Sequence record: NC_016571.1
Length of the DNA: 64,000 nucleotides
Strand: one strand, 5' to 3'
Shown: piece by piece, positions 1 to 21,566 of the stretch
Numbering within the stretch: the first letter of the stretch is position 1
How the letters are laid out: each line of letters begins with the position of its first letter
Notes under the pieces: model-generated
Seen by the model: the letters and a program-made list of their open reading frames with translations, nothing else
The model's database searches: none
What the model was told of the DNA's origin: nothing
Position numbers and translations under genes: made by a program

Positions 1-3000
1 GTTACCTGAGAGGTGAACTCTTTACCATCAACCTCAAAGGTCAGGTTAAATGTGGTCTTAACGTCACGAGCCGTTGTTTCGGCTGTTTCAACATACCACA
101 GTTTTCCACCTTCGGTATCCGCAGTGATGTAAGTGTTAGGGACCATCTCAACTTTCTTGAGTTTGTCACTAGCATCTTCGCCGGCTGCGTTGGTGATGGT
201 AAATGGTAATTCATCACCAGACTGCCAGATAGAAGTGGAGATAGGTTTGTCGGTGTAAACCAGATCTTTAATCAGGTTAGGTTGAACAGTAACATTGATA
301 TCCATGGTGTCAGATTTACCGCCATAAGTGACAGTCATCTTAACAGGATAGCTCGTTTCCTGAAGAACCTCTTTGATTATCTTACACGTTACATCGGTAT
401 CAGTTAAGAAACCTTTGCGCTCCAGGATATCGGCCGGAGCAAACGTATAAGTGATCCCAGTTGTAGCTGGTTTCAGTTCAGCGCCATTCCAGGTCAACTG
501 GATAGGGATGTTAACGTCTTTGGTTTCAACCCCAGTGACATCTTGAGATTCAGGTGTTACTGCAAGAACATCATCCCATACCTCAACTTCTGGTAACCAC
601 GCATCCCAGTTTAGATGTTTGGTATTGGCAGGGTAGCCCCAGTTATTGGCGGCTTTAACCGCAATAGACGGGTGGTGGGTACCGACTGTCTTACCAACGA
701 TATTGATACGGCGGCCTTCACTGAGACCATATGGCATTACTTCATAAAGAACACCACCATCCGCTCCATTGGAGTTGGATGGATCTGGAGGACTGAGTGT
801 GTCACTAGTAGCATCTTTGCCGCGATCAGTAATGACCACATTCAACATGCTGTTCTGACCAACCTTAAGTCTGAGTTTCTCCCAACGATCGACAGAGTTC
901 GCATGAGGGCTCATCTTGAAGGCAACACCATCCCAGGCCGGAAGGTTGAATGTACCTGTTCCACTGTAGTCAGTATTGACACCGTCCACCACTAACTTAA
1001 AGTTAAATGTAACCTGAGTGGATTTAGGTGCAGTGTCAGCATAAAGAACAGCCCATGCCTTTTTGTTCACAGCAGGGGAGGTATCTGGTTTAACATAATC
1101 GTTAGCCGTTACCTTAAGTTCCGTTATCTGGGAAGTTACATCTGTTCCAGCCAACGTCACTGTAAACGGAGGAACATCACCCATCTGCCACATCGCTACC
1201 GTAATTGGGTTGTCAGTGATGACAGGAACAATCTTACTTGCTCTGAGCTTAAACTCAACAACCTGAGTCTCCCCAATCGGATACTGAACTTTCATGGAAA
1301 CACTAACGTCTCCAAGTTCACCCATACCTTTAGCATTAAAGCTATAAGTACCGTCTTCCGTTTCCTTAACAGGAGAGGTGTCGGTGGTGAAGCCTTTACC
1401 TGTAACAGTAAGTTCGGTAATTTCAATGGCGTTAATAGGAGTGGTGACTGCTCCCTGTTCCTGGGTTAACTTAAAGATAACCTTAGTCACAGAGTTGTTA
1501 AAGTAGTTGATCTTATTATCAGTAGGTGTTGCTACAAATGGGGAAGCTTCAACAATAACTGGAGTAAAGGTTCCCGGTACTGAAGCGTAACCCGTACCTT
1601 CACCATTCTTACCTTGTTTTGGTGAGACCATTCCAACTATTTCAAATCGGAATTTCTTATACGGCATCACAGGTAGGTCGATTTGGACCACACCTTGCTG
1701 GTTAGCAGTATGCCCACCAAAGGTAATGTCTTCACCAATTTTAGCGTCAGTTGCTACATCATAGAGACGTCCAACAAGACCATCGGACTTAGCCCCATTA
1801 ACAGTCCACAGAGGACCTTCCCCATAAGTAGGTTGAGACAGTTTCAATCTCAAGGATTGCGCTACGTTAGGAGTTATAGGGTCAAGCAATTCCATTGGAA
1901 TAGAAGAAGGGGTTAATGCAAATACAGTAACACCACCTGCTATACCAATACTCGGATTATCGTCTACCGCGTAAGTGGCTTTCCATAAGAAACCAACATC
2001 TTTAGCGATAGGTCCATTTAAACGTACAGTCCACGAGTTCCCGCTCTTACCCACAATGGTGATGTTTGGAGGAGTACTCGGGTCAGATGCACTTACTGAC
2101 ACTGTCAGTGTCAGGTTAGCATTCCCATTAGGAATGGCGGCGCCCTTATACGTGATTACTGGCGATACCAAAATAGTATCTCCAGCATTACCGCTCAGCA
2201 AACGTTCATATGTGTTAGGGAATTGAATACTCAACCCAGTTCCAGTATCTACCAGACACAGGACCCCGAACTGAGTTAACAGCTCGCCTTGTGTATCTCT
2301 GACAACTACGTTCTTTCTACTATTACTGATATCAGTGAAAGTCATTGAGACTTTTCTAGCATCATCGCCTACTACAACGTCAGTAGCACCAGATACGCCA
2401 TTACCAGGTTGATTCAGTAGCGCGGTGTCAGTAACGTATTCTGAAGGGTTAACCAGGATATTTCTTTTATAAAGGGAATAAGTAAATTCACCGGACTGGT
2501 TTACCGAGCTAATTACTGGAGTGTCATTCCCACCATGGATGCGTGCCTCGTAATCGGCTTTCGTCCATTTCTTAATGGTAACAGGAACATCTGCGGTTAA
2601 CGTATATGGTTTACCTGCGTGTGTACCTGATACTGTAAATTTGAATGTGCTTACTACGTCATCGCTATCAGCAGTGATGGCGGTGAACATCATGTTATTT
2701 GTTTTTGCGAGATAACTGGTATGAGTACCAGCATTATCAACGATACTATCAATAGCGAATCCGGAAGTAAGATCCCGGCCAGAGACCGGGAGAATTACTC
2801 GGAACGGTGCTTGATAGGCTGAGCCTGCCTCGACTTCGATCGGTTTGACTTCTACGATAGTAGGTTCTTCAGCTAATGCCCGCTGAACGATATTCAGCGG
2901 GACTTCATAGCTAATGAGACCCATGTACGTAAAGGTCAAGTTGAGCGAGTACGTTGCGTCTTCATCCGGGAATCCATTAAAGCCGTAGGTGATAGTATCT

Positions 3001-3116
3001 TCACCGATTTCCTTAATGAACACGTTCGGGTTGGACTCAAGTACTATAACAAGGTTTGGATCCTTGTTGCTCAACTTTTTACCGTCAACCATCAGGCTTT
3101 GTTTCATCTTAGCCAT
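1..3116 (-). CDS. Giant Ig-like/beta-sandwich repeat virion fibre protein (partial; runs off window start, >1038 aa)
   Basis: Not in the ORF track because its stop lies outside the window. ATG at 3116 with AAGGAA RBS. Translates MAKMKQSLMVDGKKLSNKDPNL... and, at spot-checked positions near base 1, ...SIWQSGDELPFTIT...KTTFNLTFEVDGKEFTSQV, the same repeat motifs as the 4079-aa protein. Confidence 0.88.
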   Translation of the reverse strand, partial: MAKMKQSLMVDGKKLSNKDPNLVIVLESNPNVFIKEIGEDTITYGFNGFPDEDATYSLNLTFTYMGLISYEVPLNIVQRALAEEPTIVEVKPIEVEAGSAYQAPFRVILPVSGRDLTSGFAIDSIVDNAGTHTSYLAKTNNMMFTAITADSDDVVSTFKFTVSGTHAGKPYTLTADVPVTIKKWTKADYEARIHGGNDTPVISSVNQSGEFTYSLYKRNILVNPSEYVTDTALLNQPGNGVSGATDVVVGDDARKVSMTFTDISNSRKNVVVRDTQGELLTQFGVLCLVDTGTGLSIQFPNTYERLLSGNAGDTILVSPVITYKGAAIPNGNANLTLTVSVSASDPSTPPNITIVGKSGNSWTVRLNGPIAKDVGFLWKATYAVDDNPSIGIAGGVTVFALTPSSIPMELLDPITPNVAQSLRLKLSQPTYGEGPLWTVNGAKSDGLVGRLYDVATDAKIGEDITFGGHTANQQGVVQIDLPVMPYKKFRFEIVGMVSPKQGKNGEGTGYASVPGTFTPVIVEASPFVATPTDNKINYFNNSVTKVIFKLTQEQGAVTTPINAIEITELTVTGKGFTTDTSPVKETEDGTYSFNAKGMGELGDVSVSMKVQYPIGETQVVEFKLRASKIVPVITDNPITVAMWQMGDVPPFTVTLAGTDVTSQITELKVTANDYVKPDTSPAVNKKAWAVLYADTAPKSTQVTFNFKLVVDGVNTDYSGTGTFNLPAWDGVAFKMSPHANSVDRWEKLRLKVGQNSMLNVVITDRGKDATSDTLSPPDPSNSNGADGGVLYEVMPYGLSEGRRINIVGKTVGTHHPSIAVKAANNWGYPANTKHLNWDAWLPEVEVWDDVLAVTPESQDVTGVETKDVNIPIQLTWNGAELKPATTGITYTFAPADILERKGFLTDTDVTCKIIKEVLQETSYPVKMTVTYGGKSDTMDINVTVQPNLIKDLVYTDKPISTSIWQSGDELPFTITNAAGEDASDKLKKVEMVPNTYITADTEGGKLWYVETAETTARDVKTTFNLTFEVDGKEFTSQV

Positions 3117-3149
3117 TAGTTACAGTTCCTTTATTACAGGGTTGCTAGT

Positions 3150-6100
3150 TTAAGCGGATACTGATTGCTTAACCGTAGCAGGGTGATATACGTCACCAAT
3201 GACGTCAGTCTCGAAATCATCGGAAGGAGTTAAGGTTGCCGGGAGTATACGAACGTTGAGTGTTACGTCAGCGAAGTCACTACCCTCGATAGCGTTACCT
3301 GAATCCACGATAGCTTTAACTCTAACTGTGATGTCTTCAGTACCAACAACATCGCCAGTGTAAGTCAAGAGCAGACCATCGTCAGTTGCTTTCTCTACCT
3401 TGGTAACGGTGATAATACCTTTACCATCAATAGTAGCAATGTCGACAGTTGTATCAGGGTACAGTTTGCCATCACCAAAAGATCCGCCGATGTGAATCTG
3501 ACCGGTCTTACCTACAACTCCTACGCTGTCTTCGGCGACAGGTTTCAGGAGCTTACCGTTCCAACCCTTGACAGTGAACTTCACAGTTTGCTTCAAGGTT
3601 ACCAGGTCAATACCAGTACCATAGGTAACGGTAAATTCTGGCATCACGGTACTTTCTGCCGTGGCTGCATCGTAGACTTCCCAAGTGTTACCTTCGCCTT
3701 TACGTACGTAGCTATTGGCGGAGATCCCAGTGAGAGTACAATCAGCAGTAATATCATTTCCTTTGAACATTACTTTAAATGGCAGTTCGCCTTTATCCCA
3801 GATCTTAGCTACAACGTCTTGGACGTCAGTAATTTCTGGAGTCGCAGCTGGTTGCTGGGTCACTGACAGGTCAAACTTCCCACTATAAATAGGTGGAGTT
3901 TTCGCCGCTACTGTTGTTGATATAACAGTGTGAACCGCAGAATCGACATCTGCCAAGAATCTGACTTTAAAACTATCGACTTTACCAGAACCCGGCACAT
4001 ATTCGATAACCCCAGCTGGTAAGAACGTAATTCCATTTTTCGCTTCAGAGTAATCCAGCCTTGTGTTACTGGTGTAACCAATCACATTAACAGTAAGTTC
4101 GTCACCCAACTTACCAGTGACAGCATTAGGTCCCTCTATGAAGATGTATGCAGGGCTGCTGTATATACTTATCGGTACTCGTATTTTAGCCTGCTGTTTA
4201 GGATCGGTAGAGCCAGTTACCTTAGCTGTAACATCAATCCAAGAAGCAGCATGGGCATTCCTATTCGGAGTGAATTGGTAAATCAACGCCGGACCAGTAC
4301 CAGCATACACAGTAGGACCTGACATCGATCCTCCCTGACCTAACGCGACATGAGTTAATGAGGAAACAGGTTCTCCTTTATAGATACCGGCCACTCTCAA
4401 TGTTGCATTATTCCCACCGCCACTGGAAACCGCCATGGTGTTTCCGTTGTTTCCATCTCCGGTCACTCTCAAGACTAATTCAATTCCATCATACTTCCCG
4501 ATGTTGAACAGAACTTTTTGAGTCGGAGACTTCGTTACTTTACCGCTATTAACAGTAATGGTGTAGGTTACTTCCTCAGTCACTGCCTGTGTTTGATCAC
4601 CAGCAATAATCTTCCATGGCTTAGTGATTAGAGGACCAGCCTCAACACGGTTGTTAGGAGACACCACAGAAATACCAGTAATCCATTTAGCTGGAATCTC
4701 ATTACCACCAATCGCAGTTTTCACTTTGAATGGTAATTCAGTACCTTTATCCCAAACCTTCCCATCGATAGATTTAACATCAGTGACAATGAAGTTACCA
4801 TCCCAAGCTTTCAGATGGAACGTTACATCAGTACTGAGGTTAACTGCGGAAGCACCAGAAGGAACAGACACAGTCATCTTAACTACGACATCTGTATCAG
4901 CTGCTGGAGCATTCAGCACTTGCCATTTACCATCTACCAGACCAATGTAATCATTGGCTGAAATAGTGGTCAATGTCACAGTTGATGTTTTATCAACACC
5001 ATCTAAAGTCACTTTGAATGGCAGAGGTCCAGTATCACCCAGAGACGCGGTGACTTCCTGAACATCTTCTACTTCTGGGAAAGTGATGTTACTGATCTGA
5101 GTAGCAGCAACAGTGAACCATGCGAACTTATCTTCACCACCGACTTTACCAAACCCGATAAGAGCATCCTTGGTTATCTTAGGATCGGTAGTCAGCTCGC
5201 TTTCGAACCAAACGCTAATTTGGGTGGTAGTTACGTTGGCACCATTACTGGTGATCAACGGTCCTTTAACCCAGCTCGCACCACCATGTGTCAGGACAAC
5301 AGGGGTGAGTCCGTAGCGGATAGAGAATGCTAACGGATACTTCAGCGCATTGGTAGGTGAGTAACGACCTTCTACAGCAGTTGGTTGTACCACGTCAGTA
5401 CGAGGGTAATACTTGTCGGAATAATACACGTAGCAAGGGAGTTTAACCTTCACGTAGTCAACGTTCTCAACTGCGTTTGGATCATTCTCTTTGCTCAGTA
5501 ACCCGAACAGGAAATACCCGTCCTCGCTCGCCATCATATCCGTAGCGCCTGCTGTAGTGTACACAGGTTGGAATGACGGACTAGCTCCGGCTCCGGCACC
5601 TTGCAGTTTCAGGGTATGACCAGGCATGGTTATGTTTTTAGCCCAGACGCCGTACTTAACGCCTAGGTCAGCAGCGACCATTGCTCTGGTACGATAGGAC
5701 CCTTTAACGTAGAAAGTACCTTGAGCGCCAACGGTAGTAACCATCCCACCATTAAACGCATTAGGGGTATGGAGTTCAACCGCAAACTCTTTACCGTCAT
5801 ATGGCCTGATGGTAAACTGACTGGTTACCTCAAGAGTGACATCTTTAAATCCATCATTAAACACAGCAATAAACGTAACTGGCGTAACTACCCCAGCGGC
5901 CGTACCGTTGTATACTTCCCAGACGACAGTTCTAGGGTTTGCTGGATTATAATCAGGGTTTGTTCTGACATAATCATTTTGTTTAACGGTAACTGATTTG
6001 TACTGGTTTAGGGAGACAGCTTTACCGTTATGTTCAATATCGAACAGCGCGGCACCTATTTGCCAGACGTCAACAGTTGGATTCGTTATGTTCTTAGGTA

Positions 6101-9100
6101 TGGTGGTGTCACCAGCGCCTGTACCTTTAATGAGAACTTCCTGATCCCATTCGATAGTAGCGTTGATTAATCTAGCATTGTAATAAGGGAGATTCAATCT
6201 CATCTTAACAACAATGACTTGATCTTCACCACGGTTATCCGCAAGGATTTTAATTCTTGCAGTAGTGGGTGTTACTGGCGCAGCTGTTTTTAGTACCTCA
6301 ACCAAAGTTCCATTGGTAAGAACACTGAAACCAAATTGGTTACTCTGTGCTCCAGGCAAGCTGTTTCGCTCAATGTTGAGACCCATACTTAACGGAATAG
6401 GGATATCAACAATATCGTCCTTTTTACCTTCTACCTGTACAGGCGGAATGTTATCAGGGAACCAATACAGCTTCTCCTCATACCCCACCATTTCACTGGT
6501 TTCTTCAATGATTACCTTGTTCTTCTCAGGATCTGGATCAGCATCTGGTCCGGTATAATAAACCGGATACCGTACTTTACCAATAAACTGACTGATTACT
6601 TTAAAGGAGAATACACCCCAGTTAGCCGGGCTGTTAGACCCACGGGTAGCAAACTGCAAGCCTGGGTTCAATTGCTCGAACTCAGCTTTAGGAATATCCC
6701 ATGTTGACAGGTTATTCATACTAACACTTCTTCCCTTATATTCCAACAGCAGGGACATACCTCCTGTCTGGTTATAAGGAATTTGCCTATTGCCAACACC
6801 GCTAAAGTTAGTCACTACCAGATCTTTACCATCCCAAGCTTCGATGGTAAACGGAACCTCTGCTTCCATAGGGAATGAGCGAACACCGTCAGTGAATGTG
6901 AAGATATACTTCGCAGTCAGCTGCTTCTCAGTTGGATCTGCTTTCACACATGTCCAAAGAGCACTAGGGTCCTTTTTATACTCAAGGTATCCGTCTGATT
7001 CGAGAACGGCATCATTCATCCAACCAGTGGTATAGGTCGGGGTAATTACCTGACCCTGATAACTAACTTTAAATCCAGCAGCACCACCACTCTTATACAT
7101 CCTGGTAGTTTGCGGAGTTATCTCCACAATTTCGGGAACTGGATCAACACCACCAGTACCTTTGATCAATACCTTTTGATCATACTCAAGAGTATAGGTT
7201 CTCCCAGATACAGGAGACCATGACAAGCGAATAGGTAAGACAGTCTCAATATCGGAACCAGTGTTGTTATACGCGATTTTGATAGTGAAGAAGTCAAGAC
7301 CTTTATCGTTAGTGCCGGTGCTGATCGTAGCAAGTGCGGTATTCAGACTGGTGACAGTAAATGTCTCGCCAGCTGTGTTGCCCGCCATGTTGACTTGGAT
7401 TGCAGGACCGAACATTAAACCATTGGTAGGAACTTTAACCGATGCCTGATATGCACCTGAAACCTCAGCTGGAGGAAGATCATCTTTCCATGTCAACTTA
7501 GGATCAAAGGCAACATACTTGACAGGTATCTCGGCGGAGTTCTTTTTGTCGGTACCCAATGGATATCCGTTAATCGGAGACGTGTTAGCAGAGTTCCAAT
7601 TCCACTCTAACCCTAACTTACCAAGATGCTCCCCTACCTTGTTGGCTTTAAGCTGTGCGTTTACTGAAGTACCATTACCACCGCCTGACTTCCAAGTATA
7701 GATTCCATCAGACGTAGAGTTAATTTTACTTTGGTTAACAAGAGCCGATGCGTTAGATATAGGAGCGTTAGTAGCGACTAGTGTGTTAGGTACGTAATTT
7801 GCACCAAGTGCTCTCCCCACAAGAACGACGGAACCTGAATAACTATCAGCGGCGCTATAAGGGAATGCAATGATTAAATTACCATCTTGGTCGTATACCG
7901 CAGGTTTTGCTTGACCACCGACGTTCTGATGGAACGCCTGAAGCGTTTGGACTTCAATCTTGAATTGGATTTGGTCCCAAGCAACAGTGCTAACCTTCTG
8001 AACAACAGTTAGATCTTTAGTCCCATAACGGGCAGAAGTTCTAACTTTGAAGGTCAACTCAACTTCTGAATCTGCGACGTCACACTTAAGCAGTAACCAC
8101 GTAGGTCCGGCTGTCCAAGCTACACCACCCCAACTACCCGCTGAAGCGCCCGCAGTACCAACGTTCAGTTTGGCAACAGCCTCGGTATTTTCGTCACCAA
8201 TGATTCCATTAGGGCCTGCAACGGAAATCAAAGTAACGTCAGTGGCTGTAATGTCTACATCACCGGACATCACTTTAAATGGCAGGTTATAACGACGGAA
8301 GACCAGTTTCGGATCACCAGGGTTCGGAACAGTCTCCAACTCAGGAGTCATCGTTACAGCTGGCTTCACACGGTTTACAGCATCGCGACCTTCTTCAGCC
8401 GGTAAAAGCTCGGTATACCAAACAAAGTTCATCACACCGTTATAACTGAGTTTAGTCTTCAGTTTCAGGTAAGTGATTCCGGCGTCTACTCTCTGACCCA
8501 TGACTTCAAAGTACTTAGTCAATGGTTCATTAAGGTTAGCCGTCTTTGTCTCGTCTACTGCAAGGTAACCTGTCAAGTGAGGTTTGCCGTACAGAGCTAA
8601 TCCGAATGGAACTTCAAACTCCTCACCGACCTTCTTAGTAAGTTGAGTGAATGTATTCGGGGTACACGTAAATTGCGCAATCGGTCCCGGCCAGTTCCAG
8701 TTGGTATCAATAGCAGCCGTGCCATCCACCCAACCACCACGGAATGGTGCTTTGAAAGTGAATACGTGATCTTTGTAAGATCCGGCTGTGTCGCCTGGGG
8801 CTTTACCTATGATGAATAACTGGTTCTTTGATGTCGCTGGGAAATCTGGGTTCAGTATCATCCAACCGAACTGGTCTGGCGTAGGAGTCAGCGTGAGGAA
8901 TTGACATTGCTCACTAATATCAACGCCATTAGCTCTGATCCAGTTAGGGATCTTGACAGACTTATATAAGCTATCATAAATCGAGAAACCGCCAGATCTT
9001 GGCTGCCAGCGTGGATAGTCATCCGGGTCCTGAATCTGAACACGTTGTTCAGCAGTTCCTTTATGCACACGGTTAGTAGCCGGGTTGGTGTACACGAACT

Positions 9101-12100
9101 CCAACAGAGTTCCGAAGATCTCTTTTGGTTTATCCAGAGGAGCTGTGATCTCGTAGGTCATGTCAGTAGCAGAACGAGCAGTAATTCTGAAGATATCCTC
9201 ATTGGCCGGTGTAATGGTCAAATCAGGATCGTTCAGAGGGATGCTCTTACCAGATAACACAACACGGTTGTTACCTGAGCTACGGATGTCCTGGTTACCA
9301 GCTAAGATTGGGTTCGTCAGTCCAGTGATTACCAGTGGAGGTGTGACTATTTCCAAATCAAAGTTAACAACAGCATAGTCCAAATCAGCAACACCAGGAG
9401 TAGGTCCGCCAGCACGTCTGAACGTGATAGGGATCGTCTCTTTGCCAGGATCCAGAGCACGGCAGGTATAGGTAGTCGTAGTACCGTTAGTGGTAACGGA
9501 CTTAACTTCCATCAGCCCTTTCCAATCGGTTAATGTTTCATCGATCAGGTTAGTGGTCTGAATAGTGGCACGGTAGCGCTGACTAACGGTGAAAGTAAAA
9601 TCAGTATCAACGTTAGGGGTAGCTGGGTTACCTGCTGTGAATGCAACGCGGAATGTTCTTCCATCCCAAGGTTCAACCCACCAGAAGGTATCGATGTCAG
9701 CAGTGTACTCCCAGTTACGATACGTCGCGTAGAAACGGAACGGAACGACCTGGTTAGCAATACCACCTACTTCAGAACCTTCGACAGTACACTGACGAGT
9801 CAGCGTGTTGTCAATCCATACGTATTTGCCTTTACCCGTTTCGGTATAGTCGATACGCTGTAATGGATATGTGGTGTTAACAATAGTAGTATCAGCACAA
9901 GTCAGGATCGGAGAAACAACCTGTGAAGACCACATTGTCTTAGGTGTTACTGAGCTACCAAATGTGTTACCACTGAGCGCTGTCGGCTTAGGCGTCGTAT
10001 AGCTCATTGGAATTTCAATACGTCTGGTGTAGTTCGTACCACCAAATCTGTACGTCACATTTAAGAAGTCAGACACGTTAACAGTTTGGCCTGGAGCAAC
10101 TGGACCGAACAGTTCATAGTCGAATGAGTCAGCATGCCACGTTTTAGGATTCAGAACAAATGCGTTAGGCATTGTAGAGGCGCCAGTCTCACGAGTGATC
10201 GTCAGGTTCCCAGCAGCAATCTCTTTCTGAATATCCAAAGGTAACAGACCGAACAACAGTTCGAGTTTGTAAGTACCTGTGTCTTTGTGAGTCCCTGTTA
10301 ACAGGTTATCACGTTCACCTACTTCTAACGTCAGTTCACCCAGAACACGAGTATCAAGAGTTAACTCTACAACGTCACGTGGTTTAGGATTAGTACCGGC
10401 GTCAGGAGACCAGAAGACTACCTTAGTCTGAGCAACACCACCTTTCTTACCAGTAAAGGTAATCTCGTGGAGAATGCCATTGACGATAGCTTGCTTCACT
10501 TCCACTTGTGCTGGAATGGTTGACAGGTCTTGTTTAAAGGTAGCGCGAGAACCAACGTTCTGATCTTTATAGACAGGGCGGAAACTCAAGGTCACATCAG
10601 AGTCAATACCAGTTTCGATCTTACTCGGCGTGGCAATAACTTTAAACCGTACAGAGGTAGAGCCTGTGATGCGGAATGTGGCTTCAAATGCGATGACTTG
10701 CAGTTCAGCAACAGCGTCTACTTTATAGTAAGCGCGCATCGGAATGACTTGATTACCTGTGGTCGGTTCAGCACCAATGATTTCATAACCACGTGGTGGG
10801 GTCAGTTCCACATACCTGTTATCCGGGGTGACCAGTTCAAAGTGGTCAATGGCTACCGCTGATTCAGGTGTTTTAAGACCTTGCCAGAAGCTACCTTTAT
10901 CCCAGATGTTAACAGCATGGTAATCATCGTTGTTGGTTACTTCAACTTCACCCATGGTAATTTTGGCTGTGAAATTGAAAGATGCAGTCTTAGGTGTTGG
11001 AGCACCTACTTCGTACTCGATGTCGAGTACGAAGTTAAAGGTTTCAATACCACCAGGAACGTTGGAACGCTCACCTTTGATATAGATACCGTTAGAAGAC
11101 TTACCACCAACAGAAACGTAGTTATCACCTGCTCCATTCAGACCAGTGATTGTGTACTTCAAACCAGGGGCGTTCGCAGGGAGGTCATACTCACCATACT
11201 TCAGATTCAAAGTAAGGAGGTCGGTACCTTTCCAGAACATCTCTGTCTTATCACCATGATCGCCTAAGGTAAAGACTTCATCGCTTGAAACAGACTTGAC
11301 TGGAACTGTTAACGTTAACTGGTCCATGCCTTCCACTGGAGTAGCTCCAGCAGTTGCCATTTTAAATACAAACTTAGCAGTGTCTTCTGCTTGACCTACC
11401 AGGGTGTAAGTTACCTTACCAGTCTCTGGGTCATACGGAAGAACAGCCAGGTTCTTTGGAATCACAGTGTTGGTGTCATCAAGGACTGATTCAGTATACG
11501 GCTTACCTTTGTAAGTAAACTCGAACTGAAGGTCACCCGCCATACCAGCTTTACCATCTAACTTCAATGGTGCAACTTCACCTTTATAGTCAATACCGTC
11601 GAACTTAGCGATATCGAACAACACAGATGCGTCAATGGTTCTTCTTAAACCACCATTGTCATAAGTCAGCGTTAATGGTAATGACGCCTCGATTGGTTGG
11701 GTTTTGGAACCCTGAACAACGTACCAACCTTGTGGTTCTTCAAATGCAATATAAGGACTCGTACCACGTGGAACGTATTCCTGAATCTCCACGTTAAGAC
11801 CACGTTCATCGGCCAGACGAATTTTAATATCGCCATAGTCGTAAACGTTAACGTTCTCAACTGGGTTACGTTGAATCTCTACACGAGAGATACGAATCGT
11901 CCCAACCTGATCAAGAACTACGGTCTGCGGCTGACCAGTACCAACATCATTCCAAACGAGAGTGATCGTTGTCGGATACGTGTAGTCAGTGTCTTCATCC
12001 CCGCCTGCATCGAGAGAAAGCAGCAGTGATTCACCACGCATTTCAACTACGGAGATCGGATCAGCATCACCAGCATCGAAAGTAACTGACAGATTAGCGT

Positions 12101-15100
12101 TAGTCAATTCGATTGGAGAGCCAGAGACATTGAGCACCAATGGATATTCGATTTGATCTTTGTAGAAGCCCTTAAACGTTTCTGGAGCTGTTACAACGTT
12201 CAGACCATCTGGCCACTGTACTTTAGTGGTGATAGGTGCTGAGATTGTTTCAGAGCCTTCTGTACGTTTAAACACCAGGTTCATCGGATATTCCCCACCA
12301 CGAGTAGTAGTGTAGTTAATCACGAAACCTTTACCTTCCACAAACATACCGTTATCTAACAGTTTGATTGTTTCAGGAATGGTGCTAGAAGCTAATACAA
12401 GTTCGATCTTGTCGGTTACGTCGTTACCTTTATATACAAAGTTGGCAACAATTTCACCACCTTCAGATGACTTAACATCGATGGCTTTTGGATCGTAATC
12501 AATACCGAAGGTAATCTGATCCCACTCGGCTAAGTTAAAGACAGCATCTGTCATGAACTCGCCTTTAGATTCACCAACTTCCCAGGTGATCTTTAAAGGA
12601 ACAGTAGTGGTGATAGCAGTTTTCTCAGCCCAAGTAACAGACCAGTTATAACGGTTCACACTGATGTAGGTATTGCCACCAGGGACAGTTACTGTTCTAG
12701 TTCCCGTTGTCCAGTCTTTCGTACCAGCCATAAGCTTGATAGGGAAAGAACCGGTATCCCAGATCTTGGCATCGATAGGTTGCTTATCGTATTCCAGTCT
12801 CAGAGGAGGGAAGGTAATCAGTGCAGGCATGATCAAGACTTGCTTGAACGTGTTGACTGGATTCAGTGGATCGGTATACTCAATGGTCAGTTCTGTACCG
12901 ACGTTATAAGTACGACCTACGAAACGCCACAGGTTGTCAATGACACGCAGGTGATCTTCTTCACGAGAAATAATCTCAACGTCAGAGACTTTAGTTTTGG
13001 TAATCTTCAGAATAGGATCGTTCAGAGGAACGTTAACACCTGCGAATTCAAATACAGGTTTGAACTGTCCTTCCTCTTCTACATTCATAGCCAAATTAGT
13101 TGGCCACTCAATTACCTTGAATGTACGAGCCTGTTCAATCACTGCACTAAACAGAACAACACCACGCTGCTCAGGTGCGGGTACCAGGATTTCCTTCTTA
13201 GCAAATGCGTAGCGGCCAGCGCCAGTACCTGCCTTCATCTTGGTATAGTCAAGTTCGAGATTACCAGTGGCATCATTGAACTTCAGCGCATTGAACTTCA
13301 GTTGTTCTGGAACAGAAGAGTTAGCGTCAACAATTCCGACCAGTTCTGAAATATCAACACCTTCTTCGAAGACCTTGAATTCCAGTTTGCCTTTCTCATC
13401 TGTTTTACCTGTGATGGAGAAACTAGATGGAACAGCAACAACCAGGGTGTTCTCGCCATCTTCCCCGCCACCACCTTGAGTATACTTTCTAACAACAAAG
13501 TCTTGCTCAAATGTAAAGCGAGTGTTAACGCCATCAATTACTACGAAGAACTCAAACTCAACTTTGACAGGTGTGTCTTCTGTCTTACTGGCCTGAAGCA
13601 CACGCCAGGTGTTGGGAGCTTTAGGTTCATTATAGATGTATCCGTTATCACCAACAACGGCCAGGTTCTTAACCAGTTCAGTTTGGTTCTCGCCATTCAA
13701 CATAAAGGTGAATGTAGTCTTACCAGTCTGGTAACGGTCAACGAACAGTGGTGTTGGACCTGGGACAACTTCATAGACAGAACGACGTTTGACTTCAACG
13801 TTGATCGTGTATTCCGGAGCATAGCGAACACCACGAGGGTCAACCCACGTTAATGTCTGTCTAAAGCTATCCAGAATAGATTGGCCGTCTATATCAGAAT
13901 CGCGTAACAGTTTGAAACGCACACCTTCATCGGTTACTTCGAGGAACTCGATTAAGCGTTTATCACCTTTGACTCCAAGTTTAATACCCAGTTCTTTAGG
14001 TGATACTACTTGAGGTTCTTCTTCATCAGGTAATCCGTAAACTGCCTGGATGATCATCAGACCTTCTTCGTCTTTATAGCCACGAAGTGAAGTCATGATG
14101 CTGGTAACACGGAAGGAAGGTTTGACTTCTGGTTTAACAACGATCATGTTCACAAAAGCCGGAGCTTTATAAAGTGTTCCTGAATCGCTGTACTGGAAGT
14201 CAGCACGATACAGCTCAGTATCTTTATCCCAGTTCACTGGTAGATTACCGGTGATTGCACCACGGTAAGTCATAGAGCCATCTGGTAGAGTCTCGACATA
14301 AGCCAAGTTACCATATTTCTTCTTAGACTCAAATTCAGTAGCTGGGATGTTCAGAGTAACTGGATTACCCTGGAAGAACGCCTGAACGTTAACTTCAACC
14401 ACGTCACCTTTAGATGCAGTGATCTCGGCAGGAGTCACCACAAAGGTCAAATCCAACTGTTCATCTTTCTCGATGATAACTTTGATACGGAAAGTCTTCT
14501 TAACCGGACGACCCATGTACATGTGAGTAACACGTACCACGATGAAGTCAGTCACTTCCTTATCAGTCGCACCGAAGATCGTTTCACCCTCAATGGACAG
14601 TTTGTCATCAGAACGTCTCGGAATGGTGTAACCCGAATCAGTAGTGATGTCAACCTGAGCAGTCATGGTGATATCTTCTACACCACCGAACCAATAGGTG
14701 TTCGGGATGTTGAAGTCTTTACCACGGCTAGAGGTGATTTCGGTTGGGAGGTTAGATGTAATCTCAGGGAGCATCGCTTCGGCTTTAACCAGTTCATAAA
14801 TGAACAGCGGGAATTCACCCATACCGAATGCCGGATCAGTTACCTTAACCGTACCGGATTCTAACGTATCGTAATCGATAGAGGTCAGAGACTCACGAGT
14901 AGAAGTATAGGTATTAAAGAACAGCCCACCGAAAGCTTTTTGCATGCCAGACATGGTCTTGGCGTTTTCTTGGTTGAGCAGAACACCGTAAGTATTCTTA
15001 TAAGTCAACCAAAGCAGTGTAGCTTCAACATCATCGTTTGCTTTAGCATATGCTTTAAGTTCGTCAACATCATTGATCTCAACAAAAGGAACAGCGAAGT

Positions 15101-15389
15101 CCTCAAGGATCTCTTTAATGGTAACGCGTTTAACTTCAACGTCAGCACGAGCAAAGCCAGTCTTACGAGATACGATACAAACACGGACGATACCATCCGG
15201 AAATGAGATTGGGTCTTCAATAACAAGATCACCCGCAATCAAACCGGTGTAACGTTGCCGAGCAAGTTCTAACTCGTCATTAGGATCATCGATCTCAAGG
15301 TCAGCAATACGCTGCTTCAGATATTTGATCACAGGAGTGAATAAAGGATCTTTAATCACTTTACTGTTGGTTCTTGTAATAATCGCCAT
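3150..15389 (-). CDS. 4079-aa giant virion fibre/adhesin-like protein: N-terminal anchor domain plus many ~100-aa beta-sandwich repeats
   Basis: Uninterrupted 12.2 kb ORF with phage codon usage. Recurrent motifs (kiWdkGxlPFkV..G.DiT; F.i..WDG; P..i.Gk.g; Yv....W.v) in a V/T/G/P-rich beta composition. Function is inferred. Confidence 0.85.
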   Translation of the reverse strand: MAIITRTNSKVIKDPLFTPVIKYLKQRIADLEIDDPNDELELARQRYTGLIAGDLVIEDPISFPDGIVRVCIVSRKTGFARADVEVKRVTIKEILEDFAVPFVEINDVDELKAYAKANDDVEATLLWLTYKNTYGVLLNQENAKTMSGMQKAFGGLFFNTYTSTRESLTSIDYDTLESGTVKVTDPAFGMGEFPLFIYELVKAEAMLPEITSNLPTEITSSRGKDFNIPNTYWFGGVEDITMTAQVDITTDSGYTIPRRSDDKLSIEGETIFGATDKEVTDFIVVRVTHMYMGRPVKKTFRIKVIIEKDEQLDLTFVVTPAEITASKGDVVEVNVQAFFQGNPVTLNIPATEFESKKKYGNLAYVETLPDGSMTYRGAITGNLPVNWDKDTELYRADFQYSDSGTLYKAPAFVNMIVVKPEVKPSFRVTSIMTSLRGYKDEEGLMIIQAVYGLPDEEEPQVVSPKELGIKLGVKGDKRLIEFLEVTDEGVRFKLLRDSDIDGQSILDSFRQTLTWVDPRGVRYAPEYTINVEVKRRSVYEVVPGPTPLFVDRYQTGKTTFTFMLNGENQTELVKNLAVVGDNGYIYNEPKAPNTWRVLQASKTEDTPVKVEFEFFVVIDGVNTRFTFEQDFVVRKYTQGGGGEDGENTLVVAVPSSFSITGKTDEKGKLEFKVFEEGVDISELVGIVDANSSVPEQLKFNALKFNDATGNLELDYTKMKAGTGAGRYAFAKKEILVPAPEQRGVVLFSAVIEQARTFKVIEWPTNLAMNVEEEGQFKPVFEFAGVNVPLNDPILKITKTKVSDVEIISREEDHLRVIDNLWRFVGRTYNVGTELTIEYTDPLNPVNTFKQVLIMPALITFPPLRLEYDKQPIDAKIWDTGSFPIKLMAGTKDWTTGTRTVTVPGGNTYISVNRYNWSVTWAEKTAITTTVPLKITWEVGESKGEFMTDAVFNLAEWDQITFGIDYDPKAIDVKSSEGGEIVANFVYKGNDVTDKIELVLASSTIPETIKLLDNGMFVEGKGFVINYTTTRGGEYPMNLVFKRTEGSETISAPITTKVQWPDGLNVVTAPETFKGFYKDQIEYPLVLNVSGSPIELTNANLSVTFDAGDADPISVVEMRGESLLLSLDAGGDEDTDYTYPTTITLVWNDVGTGQPQTVVLDQVGTIRISRVEIQRNPVENVNVYDYGDIKIRLADERGLNVEIQEYVPRGTSPYIAFEEPQGWYVVQGSKTQPIEASLPLTLTYDNGGLRRTIDASVLFDIAKFDGIDYKGEVAPLKLDGKAGMAGDLQFEFTYKGKPYTESVLDDTNTVIPKNLAVLPYDPETGKVTYTLVGQAEDTAKFVFKMATAGATPVEGMDQLTLTVPVKSVSSDEVFTLGDHGDKTEMFWKGTDLLTLNLKYGEYDLPANAPGLKYTITGLNGAGDNYVSVGGKSSNGIYIKGERSNVPGGIETFNFVLDIEYEVGAPTPKTASFNFTAKITMGEVEVTNNDDYHAVNIWDKGSFWQGLKTPESAVAIDHFELVTPDNRYVELTPPRGYEIIGAEPTTGNQVIPMRAYYKVDAVAELQVIAFEATFRITGSTSVRFKVIATPSKIETGIDSDVTLSFRPVYKDQNVGSRATFKQDLSTIPAQVEVKQAIVNGILHEITFTGKKGGVAQTKVVFWSPDAGTNPKPRDVVELTLDTRVLGELTLEVGERDNLLTGTHKDTGTYKLELLFGLLPLDIQKEIAAGNLTITRETGASTMPNAFVLNPKTWHADSFDYELFGPVAPGQTVNVSDFLNVTYRFGGTNYTRRIEIPMSYTTPKPTALSGNTFGSSVTPKTMWSSQVVSPILTCADTTIVNTTYPLQRIDYTETGKGKYVWIDNTLTRQCTVEGSEVGGIANQVVPFRFYATYRNWEYTADIDTFWWVEPWDGRTFRVAFTAGNPATPNVDTDFTFTVSQRYRATIQTTNLIDETLTDWKGLMEVKSVTTNGTTTTYTCRALDPGKETIPITFRRAGGPTPGVADLDYAVVNFDLEIVTPPLVITGLTNPILAGNQDIRSSGNNRVVLSGKSIPLNDPDLTITPANEDIFRITARSATDMTYEITAPLDKPKEIFGTLLEFVYTNPATNRVHKGTAEQRVQIQDPDDYPRWQPRSGGFSIYDSLYKSVKIPNWIRANGVDISEQCQFLTLTPTPDQFGWMILNPDFPATSKNQLFIIGKAPGDTAGSYKDHVFTFKAPFRGGWVDGTAAIDTNWNWPGPIAQFTCTPNTFTQLTKKVGEEFEVPFGLALYGKPHLTGYLAVDETKTANLNEPLTKYFEVMGQRVDAGITYLKLKTKLSYNGVMNFVWYTELLPAEEGRDAVNRVKPAVTMTPELETVPNPGDPKLVFRRYNLPFKVMSGDVDITATDVTLISVAGPNGIIGDENTEAVAKLNVGTAGASAGSWGGVAWTAGPTWLLLKCDVADSEVELTFKVRTSARYGTKDLTVVQKVSTVAWDQIQFKIEVQTLQAFHQNVGGQAKPAVYDQDGNLIIAFPYSAADSYSGSVVLVGRALGANYVPNTLVATNAPISNASALVNQSKINSTSDGIYTWKSGGGNGTSVNAQLKANKVGEHLGKLGLEWNWNSANTSPINGYPLGTDKKNSAEIPVKYVAFDPKLTWKDDLPPAEVSGAYQASVKVPTNGLMFGPAIQVNMAGNTAGETFTVTSLNTALATISTGTNDKGLDFFTIKIAYNNTGSDIETVLPIRLSWSPVSGRTYTLEYDQKVLIKGTGGVDPVPEIVEITPQTTRMYKSGGAAGFKVSYQGQVITPTYTTGWMNDAVLESDGYLEYKKDPSALWTCVKADPTEKQLTAKYIFTFTDGVRSFPMEAEVPFTIEAWDGKDLVVTNFSGVGNRQIPYNQTGGMSLLLEYKGRSVSMNNLSTWDIPKAEFEQLNPGLQFATRGSNSPANWGVFSFKVISQFIGKVRYPVYYTGPDADPDPEKNKVIIEETSEMVGYEEKLYWFPDNIPPVQVEGKKDDIVDIPIPLSMGLNIERNSLPGAQSNQFGFSVLTNGTLVEVLKTAAPVTPTTARIKILADNRGEDQVIVVKMRLNLPYYNARLINATIEWDQEVLIKGTGAGDTTIPKNITNPTVDVWQIGAALFDIEHNGKAVSLNQYKSVTVKQNDYVRTNPDYNPANPRTVVWEVYNGTAAGVVTPVTFIAVFNDGFKDVTLEVTSQFTIRPYDGKEFAVELHTPNAFNGGMVTTVGAQGTFYVKGSYRTRAMVAADLGVKYGVWAKNITMPGHTLKLQGAGAGASPSFQPVYTTAGATDMMASEDGYFLFGLLSKENDPNAVENVDYVKVKLPCYVYYSDKYYPRTDVVQPTAVEGRYSPTNALKYPLAFSIRYGLTPVVLTHGGASWVKGPLITSNGANVTTTQISVWFESELTTDPKITKDALIGFGKVGGEDKFAWFTVAATQISNITFPEVEDVQEVTASLGDTGPLPFKVTLDGVDKTSTVTLTTISANDYIGLVDGKWQVLNAPAADTDVVVKMTVSVPSGASAVNLSTDVTFHLKAWDGNFIVTDVKSIDGKVWDKGTELPFKVKTAIGGNEIPAKWITGISVVSPNNRVEAGPLITKPWKIIAGDQTQAVTEEVTYTITVNSGKVTKSPTQKVLFNIGKYDGIELVLRVTGDGNNGNTMAVSSGGGNNATLRVAGIYKGEPVSSLTHVALGQGGSMSGPTVYAGTGPALIYQFTPNRNAHAASWIDVTAKVTGSTDPKQQAKIRVPISIYSSPAYIFIEGPNAVTGKLGDELTVNVIGYTSNTRLDYSEAKNGITFLPAGVIEYVPGSGKVDSFKVRFLADVDSAVHTVISTTVAAKTPPIYSGKFDLSVTQQPAATPEITDVQDVVAKIWDKGELPFKVMFKGNDITADCTLTGISANSYVRKGEGNTWEVYDAATAESTVMPEFTVTYGTGIDLVTLKQTVKFTVKGWNGKLLKPVAEDSVGVVGKTGQIHIGGSFGDGKLYPDTTVDIATIDGKGIITVTKVEKATDDGLLLTYTGDVVGTEDITVRVKAIVDSGNAIEGSDFADVTLNVRILPATLTPSDDFETDVIGDVYHPATVKQSVSA

Positions 15390-19348: not shown

Positions 19349-21484
19349 TTATGAGTGCGGATAAGTCGCAGTGTGGAAGTACACACTGGTCAAATCATCT
19401 TGGTTACTAAAATAGAGACGATAATAGGTTTCGTTAGGATCCCAACCGATTAAACAGTAGAAGGTAACTGTTCTTTCATTTGGATTCTCTCTGCCCGATA
19501 TCCAGCCTGTTGTCAGACTGTCATTCCCGTAATTATAATCACGTTCCACAATCACTTTATCAGAAGTGATGCCGCCCTCAGGAAGTCTAAGGGTAAATTG
19601 CATCATTTTCTTTTCTGGATCGAACTGAGCAGTTATCTCGCCTACATCAACAGGGGTATATGTGAATTCGGTATCTATATCTACCTGTTCACCATTGACC
19701 TCTAATGTCACTCGTGTCAATCCACTCGCTGGGCGGTTGTAATCGACAATGTGCATATCCAGTACGGCAGCTGTACCAACGCCATCAGAGATAGGGGATA
19801 TATTACTGATGCTACTCCATATACCAGGCATCAGGTTCTTATTCTTCCACGTCGCTTGACCGTCAGTGATTCCATTTGCTTTGATCAGTTTGAATACACC
19901 ACGCTTACGGTAACGAGTCATACGTTCCCAGTTCACCACTACACCTTCTGGACCAGTATATCCATATCGATGTTCGAACCAGGTGGATGGTTGTTTAATG
20001 TATTCGTAAGCAGTAACTTTGACTGTACTCAATACCGTTTGAACATCCACTTCCGATAAGTTAGTGAATTTTAGTTCATACCCTTCGGTTGTTTGAGTTA
20101 TGTTGAATCTTTCACCAGATGTTTCATTCATTAACACCGTAGCATCGAAACCGATTCTTCCTTTGATTGGAGTTCTGGCTGGGTCGTTAAAGGTAATGGC
20201 TACTTTGGCTTTAAACAGATATTCCACTTCTGTTTTCTCAAGGGGTTCAGGAATAGCAATGATTCCAGTCGCACCTTCAGGCCAATTAAGATATCTGGCA
20301 CCACTACCAATTATCCAGTTAGAGGTATCACCATTTGCACCGTCAACTAAGAATGAGACATTAAACTCACCCAACTCATTAAACCCAGGACCATCAGTTA
20401 CCACAGTCAGTCGATCACTACTACCTGATAAACTAGTGACTACGGCTTCAAGATGAATATCTTCACCGCCTTCATTGTAGTCATAGAAGATCTTACCAGG
20501 TATTGTTAAGGTATTGGCCTGTACACCACCACCGAACCAATATTGACCTTGGATCTGTTTCCATACCGAAAGGTTACCGCAAGACATTGAGTTCCAGTTT
20601 GGTGGACTGTGATCAAATGACTTATCGAATTCAAACTCGACACCGTTGACAGTAACCTTTCCCTTTATCTCACGCTTGCCAGGATAGAAAGCCTTACGCT
20701 TTAATGTGAGTTTGAGTTTTGCAGTTTTACCATCTGGATTGATAACGAGTTCATCCGCATCAAAGTCAGGATGGGTGGCTGCAAGAACCCATTCAGCACC
20801 TTCAAGTTTCTTACCCAAAGTAAAGGTGAGTGTCGAGATACCAGCGACCATTTGTGAACGAGTGACGGTCATGTCATCTTCATCAGGTCCTATTGGACGA
20901 TACTGGTCTCTGATATACAGAGCGGCGTTCTGTATACCGAGTGAAAGGTCCTCAACAGAAACACTACCTGATGTCATGGACTCCGGATCATAATCAGCGG
21001 TTAATGCCCTGATCTTATCGAACTGGATATTCCCTAACAAATCAGGGATGGTGTTGATTAATGCTTCGGTTTGGATGATAACCCCAAACGTTTGATTCCA
21101 GTCGTTATAAATAACATAGGAATCAACATCTTGCTTATTGGACAATACCGCTCTTAGATCGTCCTGAGTTTCCATAATTGGAACATGAACTTCGAACTCG
21201 TCCAACATTTGTTTAAAGGTAACTGGGAAAATCTCAAGATCGTATCGTGCAAATCCTCGGTGGCGTGCAACGAAACATACTTGTAATCTTCCATCGGGGA
21301 AAGGACAAATAGATTCTATTTGAATATCTCTATATCCCATTCCACCATAACGCTTGACACATTGATCATACATGGCTTGGTTACCTTCAGCCAGGTATTT
21401 ATCCTGTATCTTCTTAAGCGCTATCTTAACACATGGCCAAGCAGGGTACTTGAGCAGTGTCGTAGAATCAAACACTTTATCCAT
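19349..21484 (-). CDS. ~711-aa virion fibre protein with the shared N-terminal anchor domain
   Basis: N-terminus resembles that of the 4079-aa protein (RYGG..RDIQIE..PFPDG..VCFVAR..GFARYDLE). Start at MDKVF has a GGAG RBS. Confidence 0.75.
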   Translation of the reverse strand: MDKVFDSTTLLKYPAWPCVKIALKKIQDKYLAEGNQAMYDQCVKRYGGMGYRDIQIESICPFPDGRLQVCFVARHRGFARYDLEIFPVTFKQMLDEFEVHVPIMETQDDLRAVLSNKQDVDSYVIYNDWNQTFGVIIQTEALINTIPDLLGNIQFDKIRALTADYDPESMTSGSVSVEDLSLGIQNAALYIRDQYRPIGPDEDDMTVTRSQMVAGISTLTFTLGKKLEGAEWVLAATHPDFDADELVINPDGKTAKLKLTLKRKAFYPGKREIKGKVTVNGVEFEFDKSFDHSPPNWNSMSCGNLSVWKQIQGQYWFGGGVQANTLTIPGKIFYDYNEGGEDIHLEAVVTSLSGSSDRLTVVTDGPGFNELGEFNVSFLVDGANGDTSNWIIGSGARYLNWPEGATGIIAIPEPLEKTEVEYLFKAKVAITFNDPARTPIKGRIGFDATVLMNETSGERFNITQTTEGYELKFTNLSEVDVQTVLSTVKVTAYEYIKQPSTWFEHRYGYTGPEGVVVNWERMTRYRKRGVFKLIKANGITDGQATWKNKNLMPGIWSSISNISPISDGVGTAAVLDMHIVDYNRPASGLTRVTLEVNGEQVDIDTEFTYTPVDVGEITAQFDPEKKMMQFTLRLPEGGITSDKVIVERDYNYGNDSLTTGWISGRENPNERTVTFYCLIGWDPNETYYRLYFSNQDDLTSVYFHTATYPHS

Positions 21485-21566
21485 CTTTACAACTCCAGAT
21501 TGGTTGTTGGTTACCCAAGGGGCATAGGATCCTCCCACACCCCGTTAGGGATGCAGGAGGCTATGG

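Follow-up and report, generated by a model that had tools for sequence, protein, structure and literature searches.

The stretch of DNA analysed here (64,000 nucleotides (nt), referred to throughout as the window) matches positions 186001-250000 of the Pseudomonas phage OBP record (NC_016571.1) with 100% identity, and carries two adjoining giant genes on its minus strand, OBP_207 and OBP_206. The open reading frame (ORF) list and the record annotation place OBP_207 at window 3150-15389 (minus strand); it encodes a protein of 4079 amino acids (aa) in which tandem immunoglobulin (Ig)-like domains lie behind an N-terminal region common with OBP_209. OBP_206 (window 1-3116, minus strand; from translation and record annotation) passes the window start, the window holding its first 1038 codons and the full protein being 1859 aa. 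Here we describe the boundary between the two genes, which cuts one Ig-like domain: the C-terminal tail of gp207 is the opening segment of that domain and the N-terminus of gp206 is the remainder.

The TAA stop codon of OBP_207 lies at window 3150-3152 and the ATG of OBP_206 at 3114-3116. The 33-nt spacer between them (3117-3149, minus strand) keeps the two genes in frame and, read from the sequence, contains a second TAA (3120-3122) and an AAGGAA ribosome-binding site (3126-3131), with no terminator-like or promoter-like match inside it. An earlier note, made from the letters of this DNA, had reported the gap, the common frame, the second stop and the ribosome-binding site, together with a protein of 4079 aa whose last 29-30 residues it quoted, and direct reading reproduced every one of these observations. 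As an argument, the common frame carries no weight. Equivalent junctions in OBP and its relatives have spacers of 14, 15, 19, 20, 31 and 33 nt, so that the frames differ from one to the next, and since the other junctions have 14, 15, 19, 20 or 31 nt the shared frame in OBP is coincidental. The 31-nt spacer, nearly identical to that of OBP, is found in a 70%-identical relative. At the junctions the ribosome-binding site and the start codon of the downstream gene are conserved.

The protein features that flank the spacer are all encoded on the minus strand. The last complete Ig-like domain of OBP_207 (window 3240-3548, about residues 3948-4050) was delimited from an AlphaFold2 (AF2) model of the last 140 aa. 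It is followed by a 29-aa C-terminal tail (3153-3239) which, by alignment to fused relatives, consists of the strand A/A' opening segment of the split domain and a copy of the next strand. This copy makes up the last 10 residues of OBP_207 (3153-3182) and shares its 10 alignment columns with residues 1-10 of OBP_206 (3087-3116; columns 143-152 of alignment A1), which form the head copy of the duplicated strand. Residues 1-82 of OBP_206 (2871-3116) constitute an N-terminal module that is the body of the split domain without its opening segment, as judged from 47% identity to OBP_205 residues 1-81 and from hidden Markov model (HMM) matches. The next domain of OBP_206 starts at residues ~85-115 (2772-2864); it is continuous in OBP, and alignment A3, overlap statistics and BLASTP collinearity identify it as the alternative split site in the N1M2/Yubaba lineage.

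Intact versions of the same domain occur inside both proteins. An HMM of the domain subtype, iterated from natural sequences, matched OBP_207 at residues 779-841, 1084-1148 and 2043-2103 and OBP_206 at residues 6-66, 320-375 and 873-934, and it also matched the N-terminus of OBP_205. The internal copies, again on the minus strand, extend over OBP_207 residues ~745-865 (window 12795-13157, around the match at 779-841), ~1050-1170 (11880-12242, around 1084-1148) and ~2008-2130 (9000-9368, around 2043-2103, with an i-Evalue of 6.6e-18 and the opening segment contiguous upstream), and over OBP_206 residues ~285-405 (1902-2264, around 320-375) and ~838-960 (237-605, around 873-934). The two intact copies quoted in the earlier note were found among these, just upstream of OBP_207 residues 1084 and 2041. 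Every internal copy has about 22 more residues ahead of the strand that opens gp206, and it is to those ~22 residues, plus a second copy of the first strand of gp206, that the gp207 tail aligns. Self-comparison of the array showed that the 47% identity between OBP_206 1-81 and OBP_205 1-81 is accompanied by little likeness elsewhere in the two proteins, and that the C-terminal ends of OBP_207 and OBP_206 are alike. Since both the heads (206 and 205) and the C-terminal ends (207 and 206) resemble one another, OBP contains this kind of junction twice, at 207/206 and at 206/205.

Related arrays were collected by tblastn and from annotated records in eight phages, namely Klebsiella phage N1M2, Serratia phages Yubaba and Sureiya, Erwinia phage AH04, Kosakonia phage Kc263, Pantoea phage Survivor, Edwardsiella phage pEt-SU and Shewanella phage SXP01, and in all eight the array adjoins a reductase gene. 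Protein searches added 20 further metagenomic relatives, and the loci of 12 were examined. The tail/head pair seen at 207/206, which we call junction 1, was found at 18 checked boundaries in 13 genomes, with the head gene starting 14-33 nt after the tail. The phages split here include OBP, three close relatives of it, AH04 and Kc263. The boundaries are 207/206 and 206/205 of OBP, two in each of the close relatives L015 and L024, those of contigs L014 and L025, those in AH04 and Kc263, and others at Survivor 297/296 and 296/295, N1M2 161/160, Yubaba 810/800 and pEt-SU 133/132, and at the 778/777 boundary of SXP01, which has a further tail after gene 779. The pEt-SU and SXP01 junctions were read from alignments alone.

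Junction 1 also exists in a fused state, within one ORF, in N1M2_162, YUB_820, 13 metagenomic giants and a 5094-aa protein of Survivor, where it is internal, near residue 3280; the fused relatives carry the shared strand once. There is, in addition, a second place at which the chain is cut. Giants of the N1M2/Yubaba type and of SXP01 end ~110 aa past junction 1, inside the next domain, and about 20 nt further on the downstream gene opens with ATG or GTG; we call this site junction 2. No such break is present in OBP_206, in its orthologues or in the Survivor 5094-aa protein, the last of which is continuous across both split sites. BLASTP places these arrangements on a common axis: the end of OBP_207 corresponds to the start of the fused module in YUB_820 at residue ~3270, residues 4-110 of OBP_206 pair with the C-terminal 107 aa of YUB_820 and residues 104-1858 with YUB_810, while the single Survivor chain spans both the OBP_207 end (to residue 3281) and the OBP_206 start (from 3274). 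Where it had been asked whether relatives show a fused gene or the same split, the answer is that both states exist, together with a third in which the split is one domain later. The same chain is thus encoded as one, two or three polypeptides, cut at different domains depending on the phage, and this argues, in the manner of a Rosetta-stone comparison, that the separate products work as one assembly.

The number of chain links varies between phages, and the terminal link varies greatly in length: the gene that follows the OBP_206 orthologue in the close relative L024 (L024:22833-23441) has a junction-1 head and encodes only 202 aa, compared with 939 aa in OBP and 816 aa in another relative. 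Several annotated starts in these arrays also deserve comment. The annotated start of N1M2_161 (L002:16768; record MN642089.1) appears to lie ~600 nt too far downstream (L002:16144-16767), as the frame is open from a GTG at L002:16165 with AGGA ahead of it, and the resulting product matches the starts in eight related contigs and in Yubaba. In SXP01 (PV593634.1), 4.6 kb between two array genes are unannotated (L012:6579-11191), the upstream gene ending with a junction-1 tail, and the annotated start of SXP_778 falls in the middle of the head module and so looks misplaced.

We examined the strand that is present on both sides of the boundary, whose duplication the earlier note had pointed out from short similar stretches. 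At junction 1 the tails and heads coincide in 10 columns that are bridged by the fused proteins (alignment A1), and the mean BLOSUM62 score of this overlap is 9.6, compared with -2.4 +/- 1.9 for shuffled tails, with 0/2000 shuffles reaching 9.6; the duplication is therefore real at the level of sequence. At junction 2 the overlap is 17 columns long, with 5-8 identities in cognate pairs and a Pro-Phe that is invariant in both copies, and it scores 25.7, compared with -13.3 +/- 2.5 for shuffles (0/2000). These alignments were made with MAFFT, which favours similarity, and their register is fixed by the continuous (fused) sequences, so that they describe two independent split sites with the same design: the upstream protein comprises the opening strand region, then a loop, then one copy of the following strand, and it is with this strand that the downstream protein opens. 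In tails, heads and fused proteins alike, the shared strand has an invariant Gln in the same column. When 13 split and fused sequences are compared, nine columns are invariant in the last 140 aa of gp207, and three of the nine lie inside the 29-aa tail; judged by this sequence conservation, the OBP_207 tail is under constraint.

The position of the head module was surveyed with a profile built on the module body, which matched only 65 of 1.84 billion representative proteins at E <= 0.001. In 47 of the 53 clusters with a near-full-length match the module begins at residues 1-5, the protein lengths ranging from 84 to 3124 aa. It is internal in the other six, which are five giants (at about residue 3200-3300) and a 1790-aa protein. 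This preponderance of N-terminal over internal positions (47 versus 6) marks the boundary as a fixed and widely used joint of a narrow jumbo-phage clade.

Structure prediction gave a consistent picture of the intact domain. The last 236 aa of a natural fused metagenomic orthologue, P0012, were modelled with AF2 as a single chain from an 18-row alignment, giving a mean predicted local distance difference test score (pLDDT) of 93.1 and a predicted template modelling score (pTM) of 0.80. It can be seen that the model has a complete Ig-like domain with strands up to residues 95-105, followed by a second domain with strands at 118-121, 128-130, 133-135, 138-140, 147-152, 157-162, 166-171, 179-189 and 193-203. 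The gp207 tail is equivalent to model residues ~106-135 (pLDDT 95-98) and the start of gp206 to residue ~126, and the tail-equivalent strands (118-121, 128-130 and 133-135) are placed between the last strand of the preceding domain and the body of the next. The C-terminal stretch of P0012, which is a natural junction-2 tail, is poorly defined (pLDDT 76/76/68). Foldseek related the model to titin Z1Z2, the LdtMt2 Ig-like domains, cadherins, intimin, LigA and filamin, with a probability of 1.00 to 1f00, 8gyr, 6sdb and 1wlh; among the predicted viral structures of BFVD it matched only the same uncharacterised family, and after that generic Ig/BIG2 proteins.

The last 140 aa of OBP_207 were modelled alone from an alignment of similar depth that included fused rows. 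The last full domain has eight strands (pLDDT 83-95), the final one at model residues 100-110, and the tail has pLDDT values of 75/71/62 and no strand of >=3 residues. Since the tail is ordered in the fused model and weak when alone, its predicted order depends on the body of the downstream domain. Taken together with the internal paralogues and the single-ORF relatives that carry one copy of the strand, this contrast between AF2 models upholds the claim that one domain is divided between two genes.

What the divided domain does is best considered from the gene order. OBP_207, OBP_206 and OBP_205 would be consecutive segments of one very long string of Ig-like domains, made as separate polypeptides, with each gene boundary falling inside one domain. 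The final residues of the upstream protein would be the opening segment (about 20 residues from the strand A/A' region) and one copy of the strand that comes next; the other copy would open the downstream protein, which would carry all that remains of the sandwich. Once the two proteins had been translated separately, the upstream tail would fit into its partner's incomplete N-terminal domain and rebuild the fold of the fused relatives, the joining being non-covalent, end to end and in the gene order 207 -> 206 -> 205. End-to-end assembly by completion of the split domain in trans is the most economical mechanism for the sequence comparisons and models set out above, and on balance they tip us towards it. 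The comparisons and models show a conserved split within one domain, fused and differently split orthologues, and a tail predicted to be ordered only together with the domain body; physical association of the proteins, the exact placement of the strands in trans, the choice of the strand copy that sits in the sheet and a putative location on the virion are inferred. The earlier note had put the filament at more than 5,100 residues. The full gp206 has 1859 aa, not ~1040, and with OBP_205, which follows a junction equivalent to 207/206, a chain of 207, 206 and 205 would total 6877 residues.

The nearest functional analogue of such a joint is donor-strand exchange in chaperone-usher pili, to which it had been likened from the start, and the resemblance is functional at most. 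As is proposed here, an Ig-like subunit that lacks one strand is completed by a strand of the neighbouring polypeptide to give a non-covalent filament, and strand donation is also used in other bacterial and archaeal pili. The polarity and the donor end nevertheless differ. In chaperone-usher pili the missing element is the C-terminal G strand, whereas the downstream protein of OBP retains its last strand (model strands 179-189 and 193-203; alignment A5) and lacks the A/A' region at its N-terminus. The donor in pili is the N-terminal extension of an identical or similar small pilin, whereas in OBP a different, giant multidomain protein is the candidate donor, through its 29-aa C-terminal tail. 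Pili are assembled with a periplasmic chaperone and an usher; the neighbours of the OBP genes are annotated as hypothetical proteins, ribonucleotide reductase and ferredoxin. OBP differs further in that one strand is duplicated on both partners, and there is no sequence homology (no Pfam hit).

Other comparisons are informative in different respects. In the long tail fibre of phage T4 the consecutive genes of gp34-gp35-gp36-gp37 encode consecutive segments that are joined end to end, non-covalently, in gene order, and the gene order of OBP and its collinearity with fused relatives fit consecutive segments of a putative fibre. The T4 fibre, by contrast, has trimeric fibrous folds, dedicated chaperones and joints between whole proteins, whereas the OBP model is a bead-like tandem of Ig-like domains in which the joint is a domain cut in two; searches for family matches and for sequence matches to solved structures gave no homology of the OBP proteins to T4 gp34-37. 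Intimin/invasin, LigA and titin-like arrays share the Ig-like fold and the beads-on-a-string layout, and one relative is annotated as an 'attaching and effacing protein', but Big-repeat adhesins and titin-like arrays are single polypeptides, whereas the OBP chain comprises several and has no Pfam Big-family match at E <= 0.01. In SpyTag/SpyCatcher and split ester-bond domains an Ig-like domain re-forms when a detached peptide brings in one of its terminal strands, and it is locked covalently by an isopeptide or ester bond. Such engineered domains rely on a defined set of residues, a reactive pair (Lys with Asn/Asp, or Thr with Gln) together with a catalytic acid. The OBP tails have invariant F, G and Q, and an invariant Lys, Asp/Asn or Thr was not evident where it would be needed. 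The shared strand and the last strand each have an invariant Gln, but no invariant Lys or Thr to partner it was seen in the tails, and a covalent lock through an isopeptide or ester bond was accordingly left as improbable.

Several considerations weigh against trans-completion. The association of gp207 with gp206 is drawn from sequence comparison and single-chain models, and the packing of the tail on the downstream rather than the upstream domain is predicted from pLDDT and strand comparison, not from contacts. Simple complementation does not explain why the next strand, with its invariant Gln, is kept on both proteins. Published micrographs of N1M2 revealed no tail fibres, and the resolved tail fibres of phiKZ are unrelated gp131-type proteins; for Kc263, 'visible fibers' have been reported. 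The N1M2, Kc263 and phiKZ papers contain no information on the giant proteins described here. The doubled strand is also central to a different geometry, in which the tail binds the head without simply filling an empty strand slot, either by adding a hairpin, made of the opening strand and the tail's own copy of the next strand, at an edge of the head domain or by displacing the first strand of the head in a strand exchange, so that the joint would be real and its geometry would differ from the fused fold. Both copies are conserved, the Gln is invariant in tails, heads and fused proteins, and the doubling recurs at junction 2 with PF invariant in both copies, whereas a functionless spare copy would be expected to decay over a divergence of about 30% identity. 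Since both copies are conserved and each has the invariant Gln, it can be argued that each still has a role. However, confident folds are predicted for the fused relatives, which have a single copy, and the fold therefore needs no second one; we regard this geometry as a credible but rather doubtful alternative to trans-completion. The doubling itself suggests either hairpin or strand-exchange geometry of this kind, or a trace of the origin of the split, in which a short tandem duplication of one strand was followed by the appearance of a stop codon, ribosome-binding site and start codon between the copies. By-eye inspection of cognate pairs for a code of tail-type and head-type specificity gave no clean rule.

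If instead the split had no role in assembly, the proteins would be independent, the head would fold without its opening strand and the tail would be a flexible extension that serves another function or has none. The poor order of the tail modelled alone is what such an arrangement would give, as are heads on proteins as different in length as 84 and 3124 aa and the micrographs of N1M2 without fibres, and the case for a joint comes from sequence and models. Yet a flexible extension would not be expected to hold three of the nine invariant columns of the last 140 aa; the tail always precedes a head-bearing gene, at 18 boundaries; fused orthologues exist; and lineages differ by one domain in where the boundary lies, with their proteins still collinear. 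We therefore consider independence of the proteins unlikely. It is less likely still that tail and head are kept mainly as recombination boundaries for the swapping of distal segments, with the protein joint secondary. The head is indeed the best-conserved part of otherwise divergent proteins (47% over 81 aa between OBP_206 and OBP_205), it opens 47 clusters of varied length, and the number of chain links differs between phages, but the conservation is seen at the protein level in genomes that are only about 30% identical, and exchange of segments is compatible with a structural joint rather than opposed to it. Joining of the ORFs during translation, by stop read-through or ribosomal bypass, would account for the common frame in OBP and for the similar short peptide on both sides. 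Bypass of the T4 gene 60 type depends on a fixed frame or on matched take-off and landing sites without independent initiation, whereas the OBP family has variable spacers (14-33 nt) and frames; OBP itself has two TAA stops, with a conserved ribosome-binding site and ATG, and junction 2 has its own ATG or GTG at a similar distance. Given this variation, and given a separate ribosome-binding site and start codon for every downstream gene, read-through and bypass were rejected as extremely improbable.

Beyond completion of a single domain in trans, we put forward tentatively, as a possibility that goes further than the data on any one junction, that the split domain is a portable connector. The C-terminal tail would donate the opening strand or strands, and the duplicated strand would mediate a zip-in strand exchange that would need no chaperone; filaments of roughly 5,000-7,000 residues might result, and the chain would have been re-cut and re-fused at different domains during evolution. 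If the joint works as proposed, it would be a natural split Ig-like domain that chains different giant proteins by strand donation, with a polarity opposite to that of pili and, putatively, without a chaperone. It would explain how phage Ig-like filaments could be far longer than any single gene product, and would provide an annotation rule for unannotated arrays, in which a tail motif followed by a head module denotes one chain. It would also provide natural examples of a cut inside a domain, apparently made via duplication of one strand and later re-fused, for which the paired fused and split orthologues constitute an unusually clean comparative system for domain fission. A limited full-text literature search found no relevant paper on strand complementation in phage fibres or in giant Ig-like proteins of jumbo phages.

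The two giant genes are part of a co-oriented array that, in the record annotation, comprises OBP_209 (711 aa), OBP_208 (1252 aa), OBP_207 (4079 aa), OBP_206 (1859 aa), OBP_205 (939 aa), OBP_204 (230 aa) and OBP_203 (507 aa). The array sits downstream of the genes for the ribonucleotide reductase small subunit and ferredoxin, and its neighbours are annotated as hypothetical proteins, ribonucleotide reductase and ferredoxin. OBP_207 and OBP_206 have no Pfam or PHROG family at E <= 0.01, including no Pfam Big/Ig model, and sequence searches of the PDB with the OBP_207 N-terminus and the OBP_205 C-terminus gave no meaningful match. The two ends of the chain have counterparts elsewhere in the array. 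Residues 19-197 of OBP_207 resemble residues 17-191 of OBP_209 (29% identity; window 13200-15389 and 19349-21538), and from this sequence likeness the common N-terminal region may be a shared anchoring region. OBP_205, for its part, has ~110 C-terminal aa that are similar to the terminus of OBP_204 (32% identity; L001:9973-13518), an ending that is also present in AH04, Kc263 and N1M2 and that, on the same kind of evidence, may be a shared distal tip.

Two further observations concern the metagenomic and assembly records. The ribonucleotide reductase small-subunit gene that lies upstream of the array is called in two pieces in two metagenomic relatives (L017:823-2970 and L021:1-1589), with an HNH endonuclease gene (PF13392) between them, which could be an intron or a homing-endonuclease insertion. 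Finally, a complete-looking jumbo relative of 267,347 bp (L018; GCA_007314255.1, AAHPQS010000007.1) is present in the assembly of a Salmonella enterica serovar Saintpaul isolate, which suggests that the contig is a carried or contaminating jumbo phage.

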